A stretch of DNA of 63,746 nt, filler included, from Octopus bimaculoides (GCF_001194135.2; 6 parts of 6 records of this genome joined end to end with filler, not necessarily neighbours in it), one strand, 5' to 3'; numbered from the whole stretch's first letter, positions 17,276-41,851 are shown. The notes: generated by a model not told the origin, from the letters alone. Translations and numbers: made by a program.

Positions 17276-17594
17276 ATGCACTTCTCTGCAAGGTTGCTGT
17301 CTTTTATAAGTTTCTTTCAGTTACATTTCAACGTGAATTCTACAAACGATAAACAGCTTTTCAATGCCGTCTCCAGTGAATGTTTTTTACAGTCGCCTTG
17401 TTCTAATTGTCGTTATTCTTACTTCACTCACCCGTATAATAAGAATCAATTTGGTATATGCTATCGAGGAAGATTTTTTGGTTACTTCCATTGCAAAAAC
17501 GGTACAGTTTTCTCCGACGCCTGGAAAGTATGTATCTTCAATACGACATCGTTGAATTCAGGAAATGATACATTTGGCAGAACAGAGAGACCAG
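17276..17594 (+). CDS. Protease gene 1, exon 1: putative signal peptide plus chitin-binding type-2 (CBM14/peritrophin-A)-like domain
   Basis: ORF MHFSARLLSFISFFQLHFNVNS...CFLQSPCSNCRYSYFTHPYNKNQFGICYRGRFFGYFHCKNGTVFSDAWKVC matches the YFxHPxxxxxFxxC..G....C..G.vF....C pattern. It ends at a phase-1 donor G|GTAAGT that joins in frame to 19651. The start is uncertain: there is an internal acceptor TTTCTTTCAG at 17311-17320, so an upstream exon is possible. Confidence 0.75.
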
Positions 17595-17704
17595 GTAAGT
17601 ATAAATCGGTGAAAATGTGCACTTAAGAATTTGAAACCTCGATCTTACCAAATGTCAATATTCTTTTTTATTAGCCGCATCTACTCGTTATTTTATACTT
17701 GATT

Positions 17705-17845
17705 TTAAATGAAAATCTGGGGTGGGATTATATACATGAATGAAGCTAAAACTATGAAGGGTAAAACATTTTGTACCAAAAGTTAACATTAAATTAGGGG
17801 TGCGACTTATACACTAGTGCAATTCACTCACGAGTACATACGGTA
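17705..17845. mobile_element. Tc1/mariner-superfamily (pogo/Tc2-like) terminal fragment
   Basis: Ends ...GTGCGACTTATACAC...ACGAGTACATACGGTA; related to the terminus at 33796. Confidence 0.45.
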
Positions 17846-18559
17846 TATATTTCCCTCTCTGGGTGCCAAATTGAAATTGCGATGCTCATGGCTTCCCCAC
17901 CCGAGAACATTCAAATCGTTTATGGTAAGAATTAGAAGCAAATTGGTATTGATAACGCGATTCGATCTCGGAATCACCAAAGATTTAAAATATTACTCAT
18001 GAAAACTTATGCAAGGAGAGTCTAACTCAAGAACACAACTCAACACTCCTGGATAGACTTAAAACAAGGATCTTATCTTTACAGCCAATTATATACTTTC
18101 TCCAACCGATATTAGGATCACTGGCTTATTGTAGTCATTATTATATCTGATTGAATTTTCGGTACTTTCCTATTATTATCCCCTATTATCCGGGATCTCT
18201 TCTGGTGAATGAACATTCCCAGTTTAGCAAAAACTGCATCACAGAGACTAGCTTGCCGTCTTCTCTAGGACCAGAAAATAATTCCTTAGTGGGACGGCCT
18301 ACTGACAGTATACAGACGTTCAAGACCGCATCCTAAGTAAGCCCAGAGTGACTGATATGAAATCGCTCACAACATACTCTAACTTCTGGTCCACAGAAGC
18401 ATTGTCTCCTCTTTCTGAGTTTTCTATCGCTACTATAAGGGCCAGTGCTCCTTGGAGTTAATTAGTTTCATGCCATCTATACTCAGCTCAGTCCAACCCT
18501 TCCAACTCTCTCTCTCTCACCCTCTCCCTTCTACCCCCTCTCTCTCCTTTCCTCGTCAC

Positions 18560-18715
18560 TCATATCCTGTCCCATGTTGCTCGCACTAAACACTGCCACC
18601 AGTCTTTTCTTCCTAAAATGCCATCCCTTTGGAAATTCCTTTCTGTCCATGTTTCTTTCCCCATTGAGCAATCAACTTGCAACTGCTCAAGAACAGAATT
18701 AACCGTTCCAAACTC
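18560..18715 (+). mobile_element. CR1/L2-group LINE 3' end relic
   Basis: ARTKHCHQSFLPKMPSLWKFL resembles the RT.HY..SF.P.T..LWN.LP terminal motif. Confidence 0.5.
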
Positions 18716-19407
18716 ACCCGTTTCGGAAGTTTTACAATGACCTTGGAAACACAACTTTCCTGTAGATTAAAGCAATAAAAACTGGAAACATACCTCAACA
18801 TTCCTGAATAGAATACAAATCTTTGAAACGAGACCCGAAACTCAAATCTCGTTTGTATCTACTTTACATATGTAATGCAACCACAATACAACTGTAGTTA
18901 TCTTTCAACTTTTACTTGTTTCAGTCATTGAACTGAGGCATTGTTGGGGCACCACCTTGAAGAGTTTTGGTCGAACAGATCGACCCCAATACTTACGTCT
19001 TTTTAAGTCTGGTACTTATTTTATCGGTCTATTGCTGAAACACTATGTTGCGGGGACATAAATAAATCAACTCACCTCGAGATAGTTTGTACAGTGTATT
19101 GTCTTTCTAAATTCAAGTGCACACGAACATGTTAACAATGACTGTACAGAACTACAAAAATTAAACATGTTTTTTTCTTTTACAGTATATCTAATCGTAC
19201 TTTGAATGTTGAATGTTCATACTCACTAACTACCATTATCCCTTATTTCAGGATGGAATTTTGTGGTCCCAGTAAAAAAAAAAAAAAAATTCAAATGATA
19301 ACAGATATTCCTGTGTAACCTGTAACTATAACGATATGTATTTCTAGTTTTCACAAATATTTCTCTTTAAAACAATTCACAAGTTATCAATATTTCCGTT
19401 CGTATAG

Positions 19408-19620
19408 AGCGGGACGCTGGCAGATACTAGCACGCCGGGCAAAATGCTTAGCGGCATTTCGTCCTTCTTTATGTTCTGAGTTCAGATTCCGCCGAGGTTG
19501 ACTTTGCCTTTCAATCTTTGGGGGTTGTTAAAATAAGTACCAGTTGCACACTGGAGTCGACGTAATCGACTTAGCCCCTCCCTCAATACAGTTGGCCTTG
19601 TGCCAAAATTTGAAATCAAT
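19408..19620 (+). mobile_element. SINE family B, ending about 30 bp before gene 1 exon 2
   Basis: Colinear with 37362-37560. Confidence 0.85.
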
Positions 19621-19650
19621 ATTTCCATTCCTATAATAATATATTTTCAG

Positions 19651-39577: not shown

Positions 39578-39674
39578 AACGGCAGCCCGTGAATTCACTG
39601 CAGTTTTTGGAGAATATGACTTAGGATGGAAATCAGGACACGAACAGTATCGCTCAATTTTTCGAACTTTCGTT
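39578..39674 (+). CDS. Protease gene 2, exon 3
   Basis: Acceptor TTTTCCTTACAG; reads (R)TAAREFTAVFGEYDLGWKSGHEQYRSIFRTFV; phase-0 donor GTGAGA; 97 bp. Confidence 0.9.
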
Positions 39675-39726
39675 GTGAGATTTTTTTTTTTTTTTACCAA
39701 GTTTGCCTTGGTGTGTGTGTGTGTGT

Positions 39727-40020
39727 TTGTGTGACGGTATGTGGCCCTGTGGTTAGGGTGTTACCCGCACAATTGAGAGATCGTGGTTTCAATTCCTGGA
39801 CCAGGTAGTGCATTGGGTTCTTAAGCAGAACACTTCAGCTCACGTTGCTCTGCGACCACTTCGGCACCTGACGTGTGGTACGAGATGCATCTGTACAGGC
39901 AACGTCGATTTGACGGAGAGAGCGAGCTTATGTGCAGCACGAGCATTTGATTACTAGAAACAAATCATTTGTGCAGGTTGTTCAGAAAGAAATTGCAGAA
40001 CCGCCATCCTTCGTCTACAG
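39727..40020 (+). mobile_element. SINE family D (tRNA-derived head)
   Basis: GGCCCTGTGGTTAG...GGTTTCAATTCC head; body unlike families A-C. Confidence 0.55.
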
Positions 40021-40506
40021 CATGTGTATATGGAGAGACCACAGCGTGCGTATATGCATATGTATGTATGTATGTATGTATTTATGTATGTATGTATGTA
40101 TGCATGTATGTATGTATGCATGCATGCATGTATGTATAAATATGTGTGTGCGAAAGAGAGAGAGAGAGAGTGAGAGGAAAAGGGAGAGAGAGAAAGAGAC
40201 TTACAACGAATAAAATAAAGAGTGCTCAATACACATTTCGAGTTGAACCAATGAAAACTAAATATACTAAGTGAAACGATACAACACGCTCACATACACA
40301 TATAATCGAAGCACATGTACAATAAATATTCACTCGCACATATGTATATATGGATACATGTATGTATGTGTGTGTGAATATATATTAATTCTGTTTCCGT
40401 CGCTAATTAATTTTACTAAGTCTTCAGGCTATTTGAGACATTAGCGTCTAAAAAGATGCTGGTGTTCGTGGCAGCGAGATTTGACTGGCATGTGATGACC
40501 GGTGCT

Positions 40507-40543
40507 TCACACTGATGAGGTCCAGTAGACCGAAATTACGTGA
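40507..40543 (+). ncRNA. Minimal type I hammerhead ribozyme motif
   Basis: CTGATGA at 40512-40518; perfect helix II GGTC/GACC; GAAA; AATT palindrome; TTA triplet; helix I TCAC/GTGA. Confidence 0.6.
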
Positions 40544-41685
40544 TATGGGAATTCTGGCGCCTGTGACAGATGACTCTCATCTGCTACGATCCTTGTGTGT
40601 GCTTTTATGCACCAGGCCACCCATAATAGAGGATATTTCAAGGCTAATAGCACAATATTTGGGTCTCTAACAAGACATCCATGTTAAGTTGGATATACAG
40701 ATTAACTTAATTAATATATATATATATATANNNNNNNNNNNNNNNNNNNNNNNNNNNNNNNNNNNNNNNNNNNNNNNNNNNNNNNNNNNNNNNNNNNNNN
40801 NNNNNNNNNNNNNNNNNNNNNNNNNNNNNNNNNNNNNNNNNNNNNNNNNNNNNNNNNNNNNNNNNNNNNNNNNNNNNNNNNNNNNNNNNNNNNNNNNNNN
40901 NNNNNNNNNNNNNNNNNNNNNNNNNNNNNNNNNNNNNNNNNNNNNNNNNNNNNNNNNNNNNNNNNNNNNNNNNNNNNNNNNNNNNNNNNNNNNNNNNNNN
41001 NNNNNNNNNNNNNNNNNNNNNNNNNNNNNNNNNNNNNNNNNNNNNNNNNNNNNNNNNNNNNNNNNNNNNNNNNNNNNNNNNNNNNNNNNNNNNNNNNNNN
41101 NNNNNNNNNNNNNNNNNNNNNNNNNNNNNNNNNNNNNNNNNNNNNNNNNNNNNNNNNNNNNNNNNNNNNNNNNNNNNNNNNNNNNNNNNNNNNNNNNNNN
41201 NNNNNNNNNNNNNNNNNNNNNNNNNNNNNNNNNNNNNNNNNNNNNNNNNNNNNNNNNNNNNNNNNNNNNNNNNNNNNNNNNNNNNNNNNNNNNNNNNNNN
41301 NNNNNNNNNNNNNNNNNNNNNNNNNNNNNNNNNNNNNNNNNNNNNNNNNNNNNNNNNNNNNNNNNNNNNNNNNNNNNNNNNNNNNNNNNNNNNNNNNNNN
41401 NNNNNNNNNNNNNNNNNNNNNNNNNNNNNNNNNNNNNNNNNNNNNNNNNNNNNNNNNNNNNNNNNNNNNNNNNNNNNNNNNNNNNNNNNNNNNNNNNNNN
41501 NNNNNNNNTCTCTCTCTCTCTCTCTCTCTCTCTCTCTCTCTCTCTCTCTCTCTCTCTCTCTCTCTTTCTTTCTTTCTTTCTTTTCATTTTTTTCTTTTGA
41601 CATTTCGTTTAACTTTTTTCTTTCTTTCTTCCCTTTCTTCCTTTTCGACTTCTTCGTTTCGTTTAACCAAAACTCAAAACGAAAG

Positions 41686-41851
41686 CACCCCTATTTCAGA
41701 CCAGGCGGAAATTATCCCAACGATGTTGCTTTGGCTCAGTTGACGTCTCCAATCCAATATACAGATTATGTAAGATCGATCTGTCTTCCATCTCGATATG
41801 ACAGTTATGATAACGACGAATGTTGGATTAGTGGATGGGGTGCAACCAGAG
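41686..41851 (+). CDS. Protease gene 2, exon 4: catalytic Asp
   Basis: Reads HPYFRPGGNYPNDVALAQLTSPIQYTDYVRSICLPSRYDSYDNDECWISGWGATR; phase-1 donor GTAAGA; aligns with gene 1 exon 4. Confidence 0.92.

Follow-up and report, generated by a model that had tools for sequence, protein, structure and literature searches.

The joining of disulfide-rich N-terminal modules to S1A serine protease domains via phase-1 introns is a classic case of modular protein evolution, Patthy's class 1-1 (PMC8001218, citing Patthy 1985). In the clip proteases of arthropods and the mosaic proteases of vertebrate coagulation and fibrinolysis, a disulfide-rich module is joined through a phase-1 intron to the activation-peptide exon and stays tethered after activation. 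In molluscs, CBM14 + trypsin proteases consist of a signal peptide, a peritrophin-A module, a linker, a tether cysteine and an S1A domain. Examples are found in Haliotis cracherodii (P0100), in serine protease 30 (SP30) of Octopus bimaculoides and Argonauta hians (P0059 and P0088), and in Liolophura and Patella. In octopods, serine proteases are prominent in the venom and the posterior salivary gland, and secreted S1A proteases have undergone lineage-specific, fast-evolving expansions (PMC7656900). The present analysis concerns two S1A protease genes, A and B, of O. bimaculoides, which lie head to tail on the plus strand, A then B, about 2.5 kb apart, in a joined stretch of 63,746 nucleotides, filler included (the window, from whose first letter positions are counted). 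The two genes are members of an old lophotrochozoan protease family, and their sequences indicate that they are ancient, fast-evolving paralogues, not recent duplicates. Gene A has the architecture of the mollusc CBM14 + trypsin proteases; the first exon of gene B encodes a different six-cysteine module, the origin of which is weighed below.

Protease exons were found by motif scans and by tblastn with bovine trypsin, and both gene models were built by hand from splice sites and reading frames (Table 1). Gene A is complete, with six exons, introns that are all GT..AG and of phases 1, 2, 0, 1 and 0, and a product of 348 amino acids. Gene B, once its exons 5 and 6 from the same chromosome record are added, has phases 1, 2, 0, 1 and 0 as well and encodes 324 amino acids identical to RefSeq XP_014781253.2 (P0121), to which its exon 1 is a 100% match. 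RefSeq calls gene A 'chymotrypsin-like protease CTRL-1' and gene B 'chymotrypsinogen A'. The catalytic triad stands in the contexts TAAHC, D-I/V-A-L and GDSGGP, and the piece of the window that was analysed holds all three for gene A and those of His and Asp for gene B. The Pfam Trypsin profile (PF00089, cut-off 20.6 bits) scores gene A at 202.6 bits and exons 1-4 of gene B, taken on their own, at 122.7 bits. These models bear out what a sequence-only reading of the window had described: two same-strand proteases with matching intron phases (1, 2, 0, 1) and 97-bp third exons, and dissimilar six-cysteine first exons that both open with C-x5-C-x2-C and contain the pentapeptide CRYSY at different cysteines (17408-17422, at the third cysteine of gene A; 35728-35742, at the first of gene B).

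The intron match and the 97-bp exon looked like evidence of a recent duplication, and this use of them does not hold. Five relatives were mapped to their own genomes with an exact-translation splice mapper that had been validated on gene B (Table 1). In all five, a phase-1 intron precedes the last five exons, which encode the activation peptide and the catalytic domain, and the introns among these exons have phases 2, 0, 1 and 0. As this layout is common to mollusc and annelid relatives, the match between A and B is a family-wide ancestral trait, present in a gastropod, a bivalve, a chiton, an annelid and another octopus gene, and it is uninformative on recent duplication. The ancestral layout consists of one or more first exons that end in phase 1 and carry the signal peptide and a disulfide-rich module, followed by five catalytic exons with phases 2, 0, 1 and 0. 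In genes A and B the signal peptide and the module occupy one first exon, as in the CBM14-type relatives. In clip-like relatives the module lies on a separate exon or exons after the signal-peptide exon, as a single 1-1 cassette in Pinctada (a symmetric phase 1-1 exon of 186 nt, L006 3253-3438) and split in two in Owenia. The module exons of A and B are not symmetric class 1-1 exons, since each module shares its exon with the start codon and only its 3' boundary is in phase 1.

The sequence-only reading named, as one thing that would refute it, catalytic domains of A and B that are not close relatives in a tree, and what was found comes near to that condition. Identity between the two is 39% over the 142 amino acids of exons 2-4 and about 41% over 233 aligned columns, and each is 40-45% identical to relatives from other mollusc classes and an annelid. 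In the catalytic tree that the reading had called for (neighbour-joining, 28 sequences, 300 bootstraps, one octopus paralogue besides A and B), a lophotrochozoan group has 88% support, its backbone does not resolve, and A and B form a clade of their own in 7% of replicates. Among 1.84 billion cluster representatives searched with gene B (P0121), no protein outside the genus Octopus was more than 47% identical, and the matches were mostly multi-domain polyserases, none of which shared the gene B module. A word-index search with the full gene B protein returned Octopus orthologues and distant catalytic matches only, and the same kind of search with gene A found no relative more than about 42% identical outside the genus. 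Recent tandem duplicates should be each other's closest relatives, and A and B are not demonstrably so. Given the poor sampling of octopus paralogues, their adjacency may still go back to an ancient tandem duplication.

The first exon of gene A can be assigned to a known domain family. Its cysteines lie at residues 36, 42, 45, 62, 73 and 86 (spacing 5, 2, 16, 10, 12). Pfam CBM_14 (PF01607) matches it at 20-20.5 bits (E 5e-4 to 8e-4), under the gathering cut-off of 22.1 bits. A hidden Markov model (HMM) built from mollusc protease CBM14 modules, gene A left out, scores it at 18.9 bits, a value reached by none of 5000 shuffles, and hhalign aligns it to those modules with an E of 2.9e-4 over 49 columns. 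In a gapless alignment to CBM14, C42, C62, C73 and C86 correspond to canonical cysteines 1, 3, 4 and 5; Lys56 stands at the position of Cys 2, Cys 6 has no counterpart, and C36 and C45 are additional to the canonical set, so that four of the six canonical cysteines are present. CBM14 domains usually pair Cys 2 with Cys 6, and the gene A module would therefore have lost one entire disulfide. Structure prediction, proposed in the sequence-only reading for both modules, was informative here: AlphaFold2 (AF2) gives residues 31-90 as a small beta-rich domain with block means of the predicted local distance difference test (pLDDT) of 64-89. Aromatic residues are abundant in the hairpin region, and the CBM14 + Trypsin architecture recurs in Argonauta, Haliotis, Patella and Liolophura. 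By homology, then, the gene A module is classed as a degenerate CBM14 (peritrophin-A) chitin-binding domain. The family profile matches solved CBM14 domains in chitotriosidase, chitinases, mite allergens and a squid beak chitin-binding protein. The gene A module would most likely still bind chitin or a related matrix.

The short, very basic module of gene B is an orphan. Its cysteines, at residues 28, 34, 37, 47, 53 and 65, are spaced 5, 2, 9, 5 and 11, and exon 1 is intact, with all six kept, in Octopus sinensis and Octopus vulgaris. The module has no Pfam match at E up to 10, no sequence match in PDB, and no relative outside Octopus among 5.8 billion proteins; a word-index search with exon 1 alone returned no homologue. 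In many lophotrochozoan relatives (P0261, P0079, P0076, P0254, P0255, P0260 and P0181) the protease domain is preceded by a clip or beta-defensin-like six-cysteine module of the form C-x6-C-x5-C-x10-C-x5-CC. The two of these that were tested, from P0261 and P0079, have no Pfam match.

To account for the dissimilar modules, the sequence-only reading offered two ways: that exon 1 was replaced after duplication, or that one ancestral module diverged very fast. The swap, which it chose for its title, is without support; divergence is mildly favoured, though unproven, because of the cysteine register between the modules, the placing of signal peptide and module on one exon, and the lack of a relic exon. 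Five of the six gene B cysteines fall in register with those of gene A with at most two gap residues, and the remaining one lies opposite Lys56, where Cys 2 has been lost. Shuffling of B alone gave a five-cysteine register in 6 of 2000 trials and shuffling of both modules in 1 of 2000, and all other modules tested (five CBM14, seven clip-like) put at most four cysteines in register with B under the same gap limit. Gene B also keeps the C-x-x-Y-x-x-C hallmark between the positions of CBM14 Cys 2 and Cys 3, and the activation site N/I(V/M)GG is common to gene B and the Haliotis CBM14 protease. A shared pentapeptide occurs in about 0.3% of shuffles (p about 0.003); the serine codons of the two CRYSY motifs differ (TCT and AGC), and in O. 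sinensis the gene A orthologue has CLYSY in its place. On these sequence features the gene B module is probably, if by no wide margin of confidence, a common CBM14-like ancestral first exon that was truncated C-terminally and diverged past sequence recognition. Several results weigh against this reading. Local alignment of the two modules is not significant (p 0.18-0.55 against shuffles), the score of gene B against the CBM14 HMM is exceeded by about half of the shuffles, and hhalign gives an E of 0.16 against CBM14 over 11 columns. AF2 models the gene B module at pLDDT below 50 and both catalytic domains well. The register test was post hoc, and its random-cysteine null is generous, since cysteine-rich domains have non-random spacing. 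The nearest sampled catalytic relatives of gene B (P0261 and Owenia) carry a clip/defensin-like module in which the first five cysteines are spaced similarly; the tree that would place them lacks a resolved backbone and holds a single other octopus paralogue. Lastly, the O. bimaculoides RefSeq model of gene A is in another frame of exon 1, as discussed below.

If the whole first exon of gene B had instead been replaced after a tandem duplication, by an unrelated or de novo cysteine-rich exon, the modules would be expected to be dissimilar in every sequence test, as they are, and the gene B module to be without relatives in Pfam, in PDB sequences and among the 5.8 billion proteins outside Octopus. 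Any phase-1 exon could take the place of exon 1, which itself ends in that phase. The ratio of nonsynonymous to synonymous rates (dN/dS) between O. bimaculoides and O. sinensis, computed per exon as had been proposed, is about 1.3 for gene B exon 1 (2 synonymous, 10 nonsynonymous), a value that would suit a young or fast module; it is 0.29 for gene A exon 1 and 0.38-0.46 for catalytic exons. With 2-10 substitutions per exon, however, exon 1 is inseparable from the catalytic exons, and the excess in gene B lacks significance (Fisher p 0.27). The upstream DNA and intron 1 of both genes, in O. bimaculoides as in O. sinensis, show no relic of an earlier module exon, the cysteine framework of B matches that of A beyond chance, and a catalytic identity of about 41% makes the dissimilarity of the modules explicable without a special event. 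We consider such a replacement unlikely, though it deserves to be kept in mind. A separate origin of the two genes has less to recommend it: A would come from a CBM14-bearing lineage and B from a clip/defensin-like one, the B module being a degenerate clip-like module and the adjacency a very old duplication or chance. The best single-domain catalytic matches of gene B (P0261 at 47%, Owenia at 45%) do carry a clip-like module, the clip spacing of 6, 5, 10 and 5 resembles the 5, 2, 9 and 5 of gene B, and A and B do not cluster in the tree. Yet gene B, with its spacing of 5, 2, 9, 5 and 11, lacks the defining CC doublet; the clip-like HMM scores it no better than shuffles, and hhalign (E 0.031) aligns 6 columns only. 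Clip modules in Pinctada and Owenia stand on separate exons after the signal-peptide exon, unlike that of B, at most four of their cysteines are in register with B compared with five for gene A, and the tree nodes that join B to the clip group are unsupported. This origin is accordingly rated very unlikely, and divergence from a shared CBM14-like first exon is the reading retained here.

The comparison of the modules would be moot if the real transcript of gene A began elsewhere. The public models compared at the locus (P0129, P0131, P0132 and P0122) disagree on this point. RefSeq XP_052827951.1 (P0131) of O. bimaculoides starts at an ATG at 17364 in another frame, uses a donor at 17527/17528 and continues into a candidate exon, 1b, at 19186-19274. 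The start and exon 1b are present in both O. bimaculoides Gnomon models (P0129, P0131), the splice sites are all canonical and kept in O. sinensis, and between that species and O. bimaculoides exon 1b has changed less than the remainder of the intron (3 differences in 89 positions versus 76 in 488, p 0.001). Set against this, where the two frames overlap, O. bimaculoides and O. sinensis differ by 5 synonymous and 3 nonsynonymous changes in the cysteine-rich frame and by 1 and 7 in the alternative one, and domain homology, significant for CBM14, is found only in the cysteine-rich frame. That frame of 106 codons is intact in O. sinensis with all six cysteines kept (dN/dS 0.29), is the one read by the O. 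sinensis model XP_036362892.1 (P0132), and shares the exon layout of Haliotis, SP30 and gene B. P0131 is, moreover, a poor model, which keeps intron sequence within the catalytic domain. The comparative evidence thus favours the cysteine-rich frame, and that the alternative start represents the real gene A transcript seems highly improbable. Exon 1b, which would bring in a stop codon if joined after the cysteine-rich exon 1, may act as a regulatory element or be spliced in as an alternative or poison exon. Other public models have faults of their own: an older O. bimaculoides model and P0132 fuse A and B as 'transmembrane protease serine 9-like', and the O. vulgaris model of gene B begins inside exon 1. 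No GT follows the last codon of gene A in O. sinensis at the presumed A-to-B junction, and the splice mapper, with canonical donors, reproduced neither the fused P0132 nor P0131. A bolder view, which we regard as quite unlikely, joins exon 1b to the orphan module: exon 1 of gene B would be a new disulfide-rich fold of the Octopus lineage (basic, six cysteines kept, loops about neutral) that replaced the chitin-binding module in one copy of the pair, and exon 1b could also switch off or poison the chitin-binding isoform. If true, first-exon replacement that retargets a secreted protease would have been caught in the act.

By analogy with characterized proteases, both genes would encode secreted, chymotrypsin-like S1A zymogens from which the signal peptide is removed. 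The sequence features on which this rests are AQCG...SL/VVGG and VCLP in gene A, and DGCG...RN/IVGG and ICLP in gene B. The zymogen would be cut at L116/VVGG in A or N84/IVGG in B, and the new N-terminus would form the active site. Eight residues before the cut lies a cysteine (QCG in A, GCG in B) that would pair with Cys122 (VCLP in A, ICLP in B), so that the module would stay tethered to the catalytic chain after cleavage and could localise the active enzyme. Glycine at position 189, as read from both sequences, argues against trypsin-like specificity. Both activation sites are non-basic (Leu/Val-Val-Gly-Gly at 19677-19682 in A, Asn/Ile-Val-Gly-Gly at 38784-38789 in B); Asn/Ile-(Val/Met)-Gly-Gly is common to the Haliotis and Patella relatives (P0100, P0086), and octopus SP30 (P0059) has Met/Ile-Val-Gly-Gly. 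Since the sites are non-basic, the activator would not be trypsin-like. The Asn site suggests a legumain-like activator, and the Leu site a chymotrypsin-like activator or self-activation.

The piece analysed, 16421-44870, has 38.5% G+C and contains three gaps of N; it is identical, with the same gaps, to chromosome record CM046611.1 of GCA_001194135.2 near 56.15 Mb. The gaps fall in intron 5 of gene A (31601-32004), between the genes (34100-34677) and in intron 3 of gene B (40731-41508). All three lie in introns or intergenic DNA, and neither reading frame needs continuity across a gap. On either side of every gap the piece is collinear, at similar distances, with the gap-free O. sinensis locus (L002), in which the intervals that match the three gaps hold no extra protease exon. 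Both genes are conserved as an intact pair in O. sinensis. In O. vulgaris an intact gene B is present, and of gene A the retrieved locus spans only the last two exons. No further protease exon was found within 10 kb on either side of the pair in O. sinensis, where the downstream neighbour is a leucine-rich-repeat/immunoglobulin gene, and hence the locus is a pair, not an array.

Repeats are frequent around the exons. Introns of genes A and B contain, in both orientations, short dispersed repeats that belong to at least two families (71-91% identical, resembling short interspersed elements). Microsatellites stand at three of the six gap edges, with (AT)n right of gap 34100-34677, (TCTC)n right of gap 40731-41508 and a CT-rich run left of gap 31601-32004; an (AC)n run lies at 31214-31255, about 350 nt before gap 31601-32004. 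The gaps probably mark assembly breaks at simple repeats. An open reading frame of 179 amino acids on the minus strand (36734-37273), in intron 1 of gene B, overlaps the dispersed repeat at 37150-37301 and is probably a transposon remnant. An Rfam scan of the piece found no RNA family.

Table 1. Exons, modules and repeats of the gene A and gene B locus, and exon layouts of five mapped relatives.
Feature	Position	Strand	Details
Gene A exon 1	17276-17594	+	319 nt, ends phase 1; start codon, signal-peptide-like N-terminus, six-Cys module, linker with several N-x-S/T sequons
Gene A CBM14-like domain, degenerate (predicted)	17399-17545	+	residues 42-90
Gene A candidate alternative exon 1b	19186-19274	+	89 nt, in intron 1; canonical splice sites
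Gene A exon 2	19651-19813	+	163 nt, phase 1 to 2; tether Cys AQCG, activation site L116/V117VGG, TAAHC, His57 codon 19800-19802
Gene A exon 3	21877-21973	+	97 nt, phase 2 to 0
Gene A exon 4	23485-23653	+	169 nt, phase 0 to 1; NDIAL, Asp102 codon 23521-23523, Cys122 in VCLP, GWG
Gene A exon 5	28404-28537	+	134 nt, phase 1 to 0
Gene A exon 6	32990-33154	+	165 nt including stop; GDSGGP, Ser195 codon 32996-32998; Gly at position 189; beyond gap 31601-32004
Gene B exon 1	35647-35869	+	223 nt, ends phase 1; start codon, signal peptide, basic six-Cys module, short linker
Gene B orphan six-Cys module	35728-35841	+	residues 28-65, C-x5-C-x2-C-x9-C-x5-C-x11-C
Gene B exon 2	38758-38923	+	166 nt, phase 1 to 2; tether Cys DGCG, activation site N84/I85VGG, TAAHC, His codon 38910-38912
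Gene B exon 3	39578-39674	+	97 nt, phase 2 to 0
Gene B exon 4	41686-41851	+	166 nt, phase 0 to 1; NDVAL, Asp codon 41722-41724, Cys122 in ICLP; begins 178 nt past gap 40731-41508
Gene B exons 5 and 6	L001 21709-21845, 23347-23532		same chromosome record, outside the piece; Ser on exon 6
Dispersed repeats	20008-20097, 21192-21281, 22336-22425; inverted copies 32011-32172		one copy adjoins right edge of gap 31601-32004
Further dispersed repeats	19428-19579, 37150-37301, 28003-28138		
Simple repeats at gaps and piece end	34678-34720, 41509-41581, 44817-44870		44817-44870 is (AT)n at the piece end
Haliotis cracherodii P0100			exons 355/187/97/190/134/168 nt; phases 1,2,0,1,0
O. bimaculoides 'serine protease 30' P0059			exons 574/169/106/172/137/201 nt; phases 1,2,0,1,0
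Pinctada P0079			exons 46/186/199/97/172/134/168 nt; phases 1,1,2,0,1,0
Owenia (annelid) P0076			exons 67/73/152/172/100/172/140/165 nt; phases 1,2,1,2,0,1,0
Liolophura (chiton) P0106			exons 105/364/172/106/172/137/189 nt; phases 0,1,2,0,1,0

Both genes are already annotated in RefSeq, and what is new is the corrected model and domain assignment of gene A, the orphan module of gene B and the conserved candidate alternative exon. The main value of the analysis lies in a correction: the matching intron phases and 97-bp exon were inherited as an ancestral signature within a protease family that annelids, bivalves, chitons, gastropods and cephalopods share. For gene A a better model is offered than the O. 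bimaculoides RefSeq one, which appears to have the wrong frame in exon 1 and keeps an intron, and than the other models, which fuse the genes. A protease with a chitin-binding domain is plausible in a crustacean-eater that has a chitinous beak, radula and gut linings. The gene B module is flagged as an orphan.

Compared with the salivary venom proteases (PMC7656900), A and B are likewise octopod S1A proteases and predicted to be secreted, but they form a pair, not a large array. The 'plug-in targeting-domain system' that the sequence-only reading proposed is the long-known modular build of S1A proteases via phase-1 introns (PMC8001218), and not a new system. The modules of A and B differ from those of the clip and mosaic proteases in that they are part of a signal-peptide first exon and not a symmetric 1-1 cassette, and neither has the clip CC doublet. 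The closest likeness is to the mollusc CBM14 + trypsin proteases. Relative to these, the CBM14 domain of gene A falls below the Pfam gathering cut-off, with Cys 2 and Cys 6 lost and two other cysteines gained, and gene B is without a recognisable CBM14 domain. Catalytic identity to them is 40-43%, their intron phases (1, 2, 0, 1, 0) are identical to those of A and B, their activation sites are non-basic, and the Haliotis gene also has the 97-nt and 134-nt exons.

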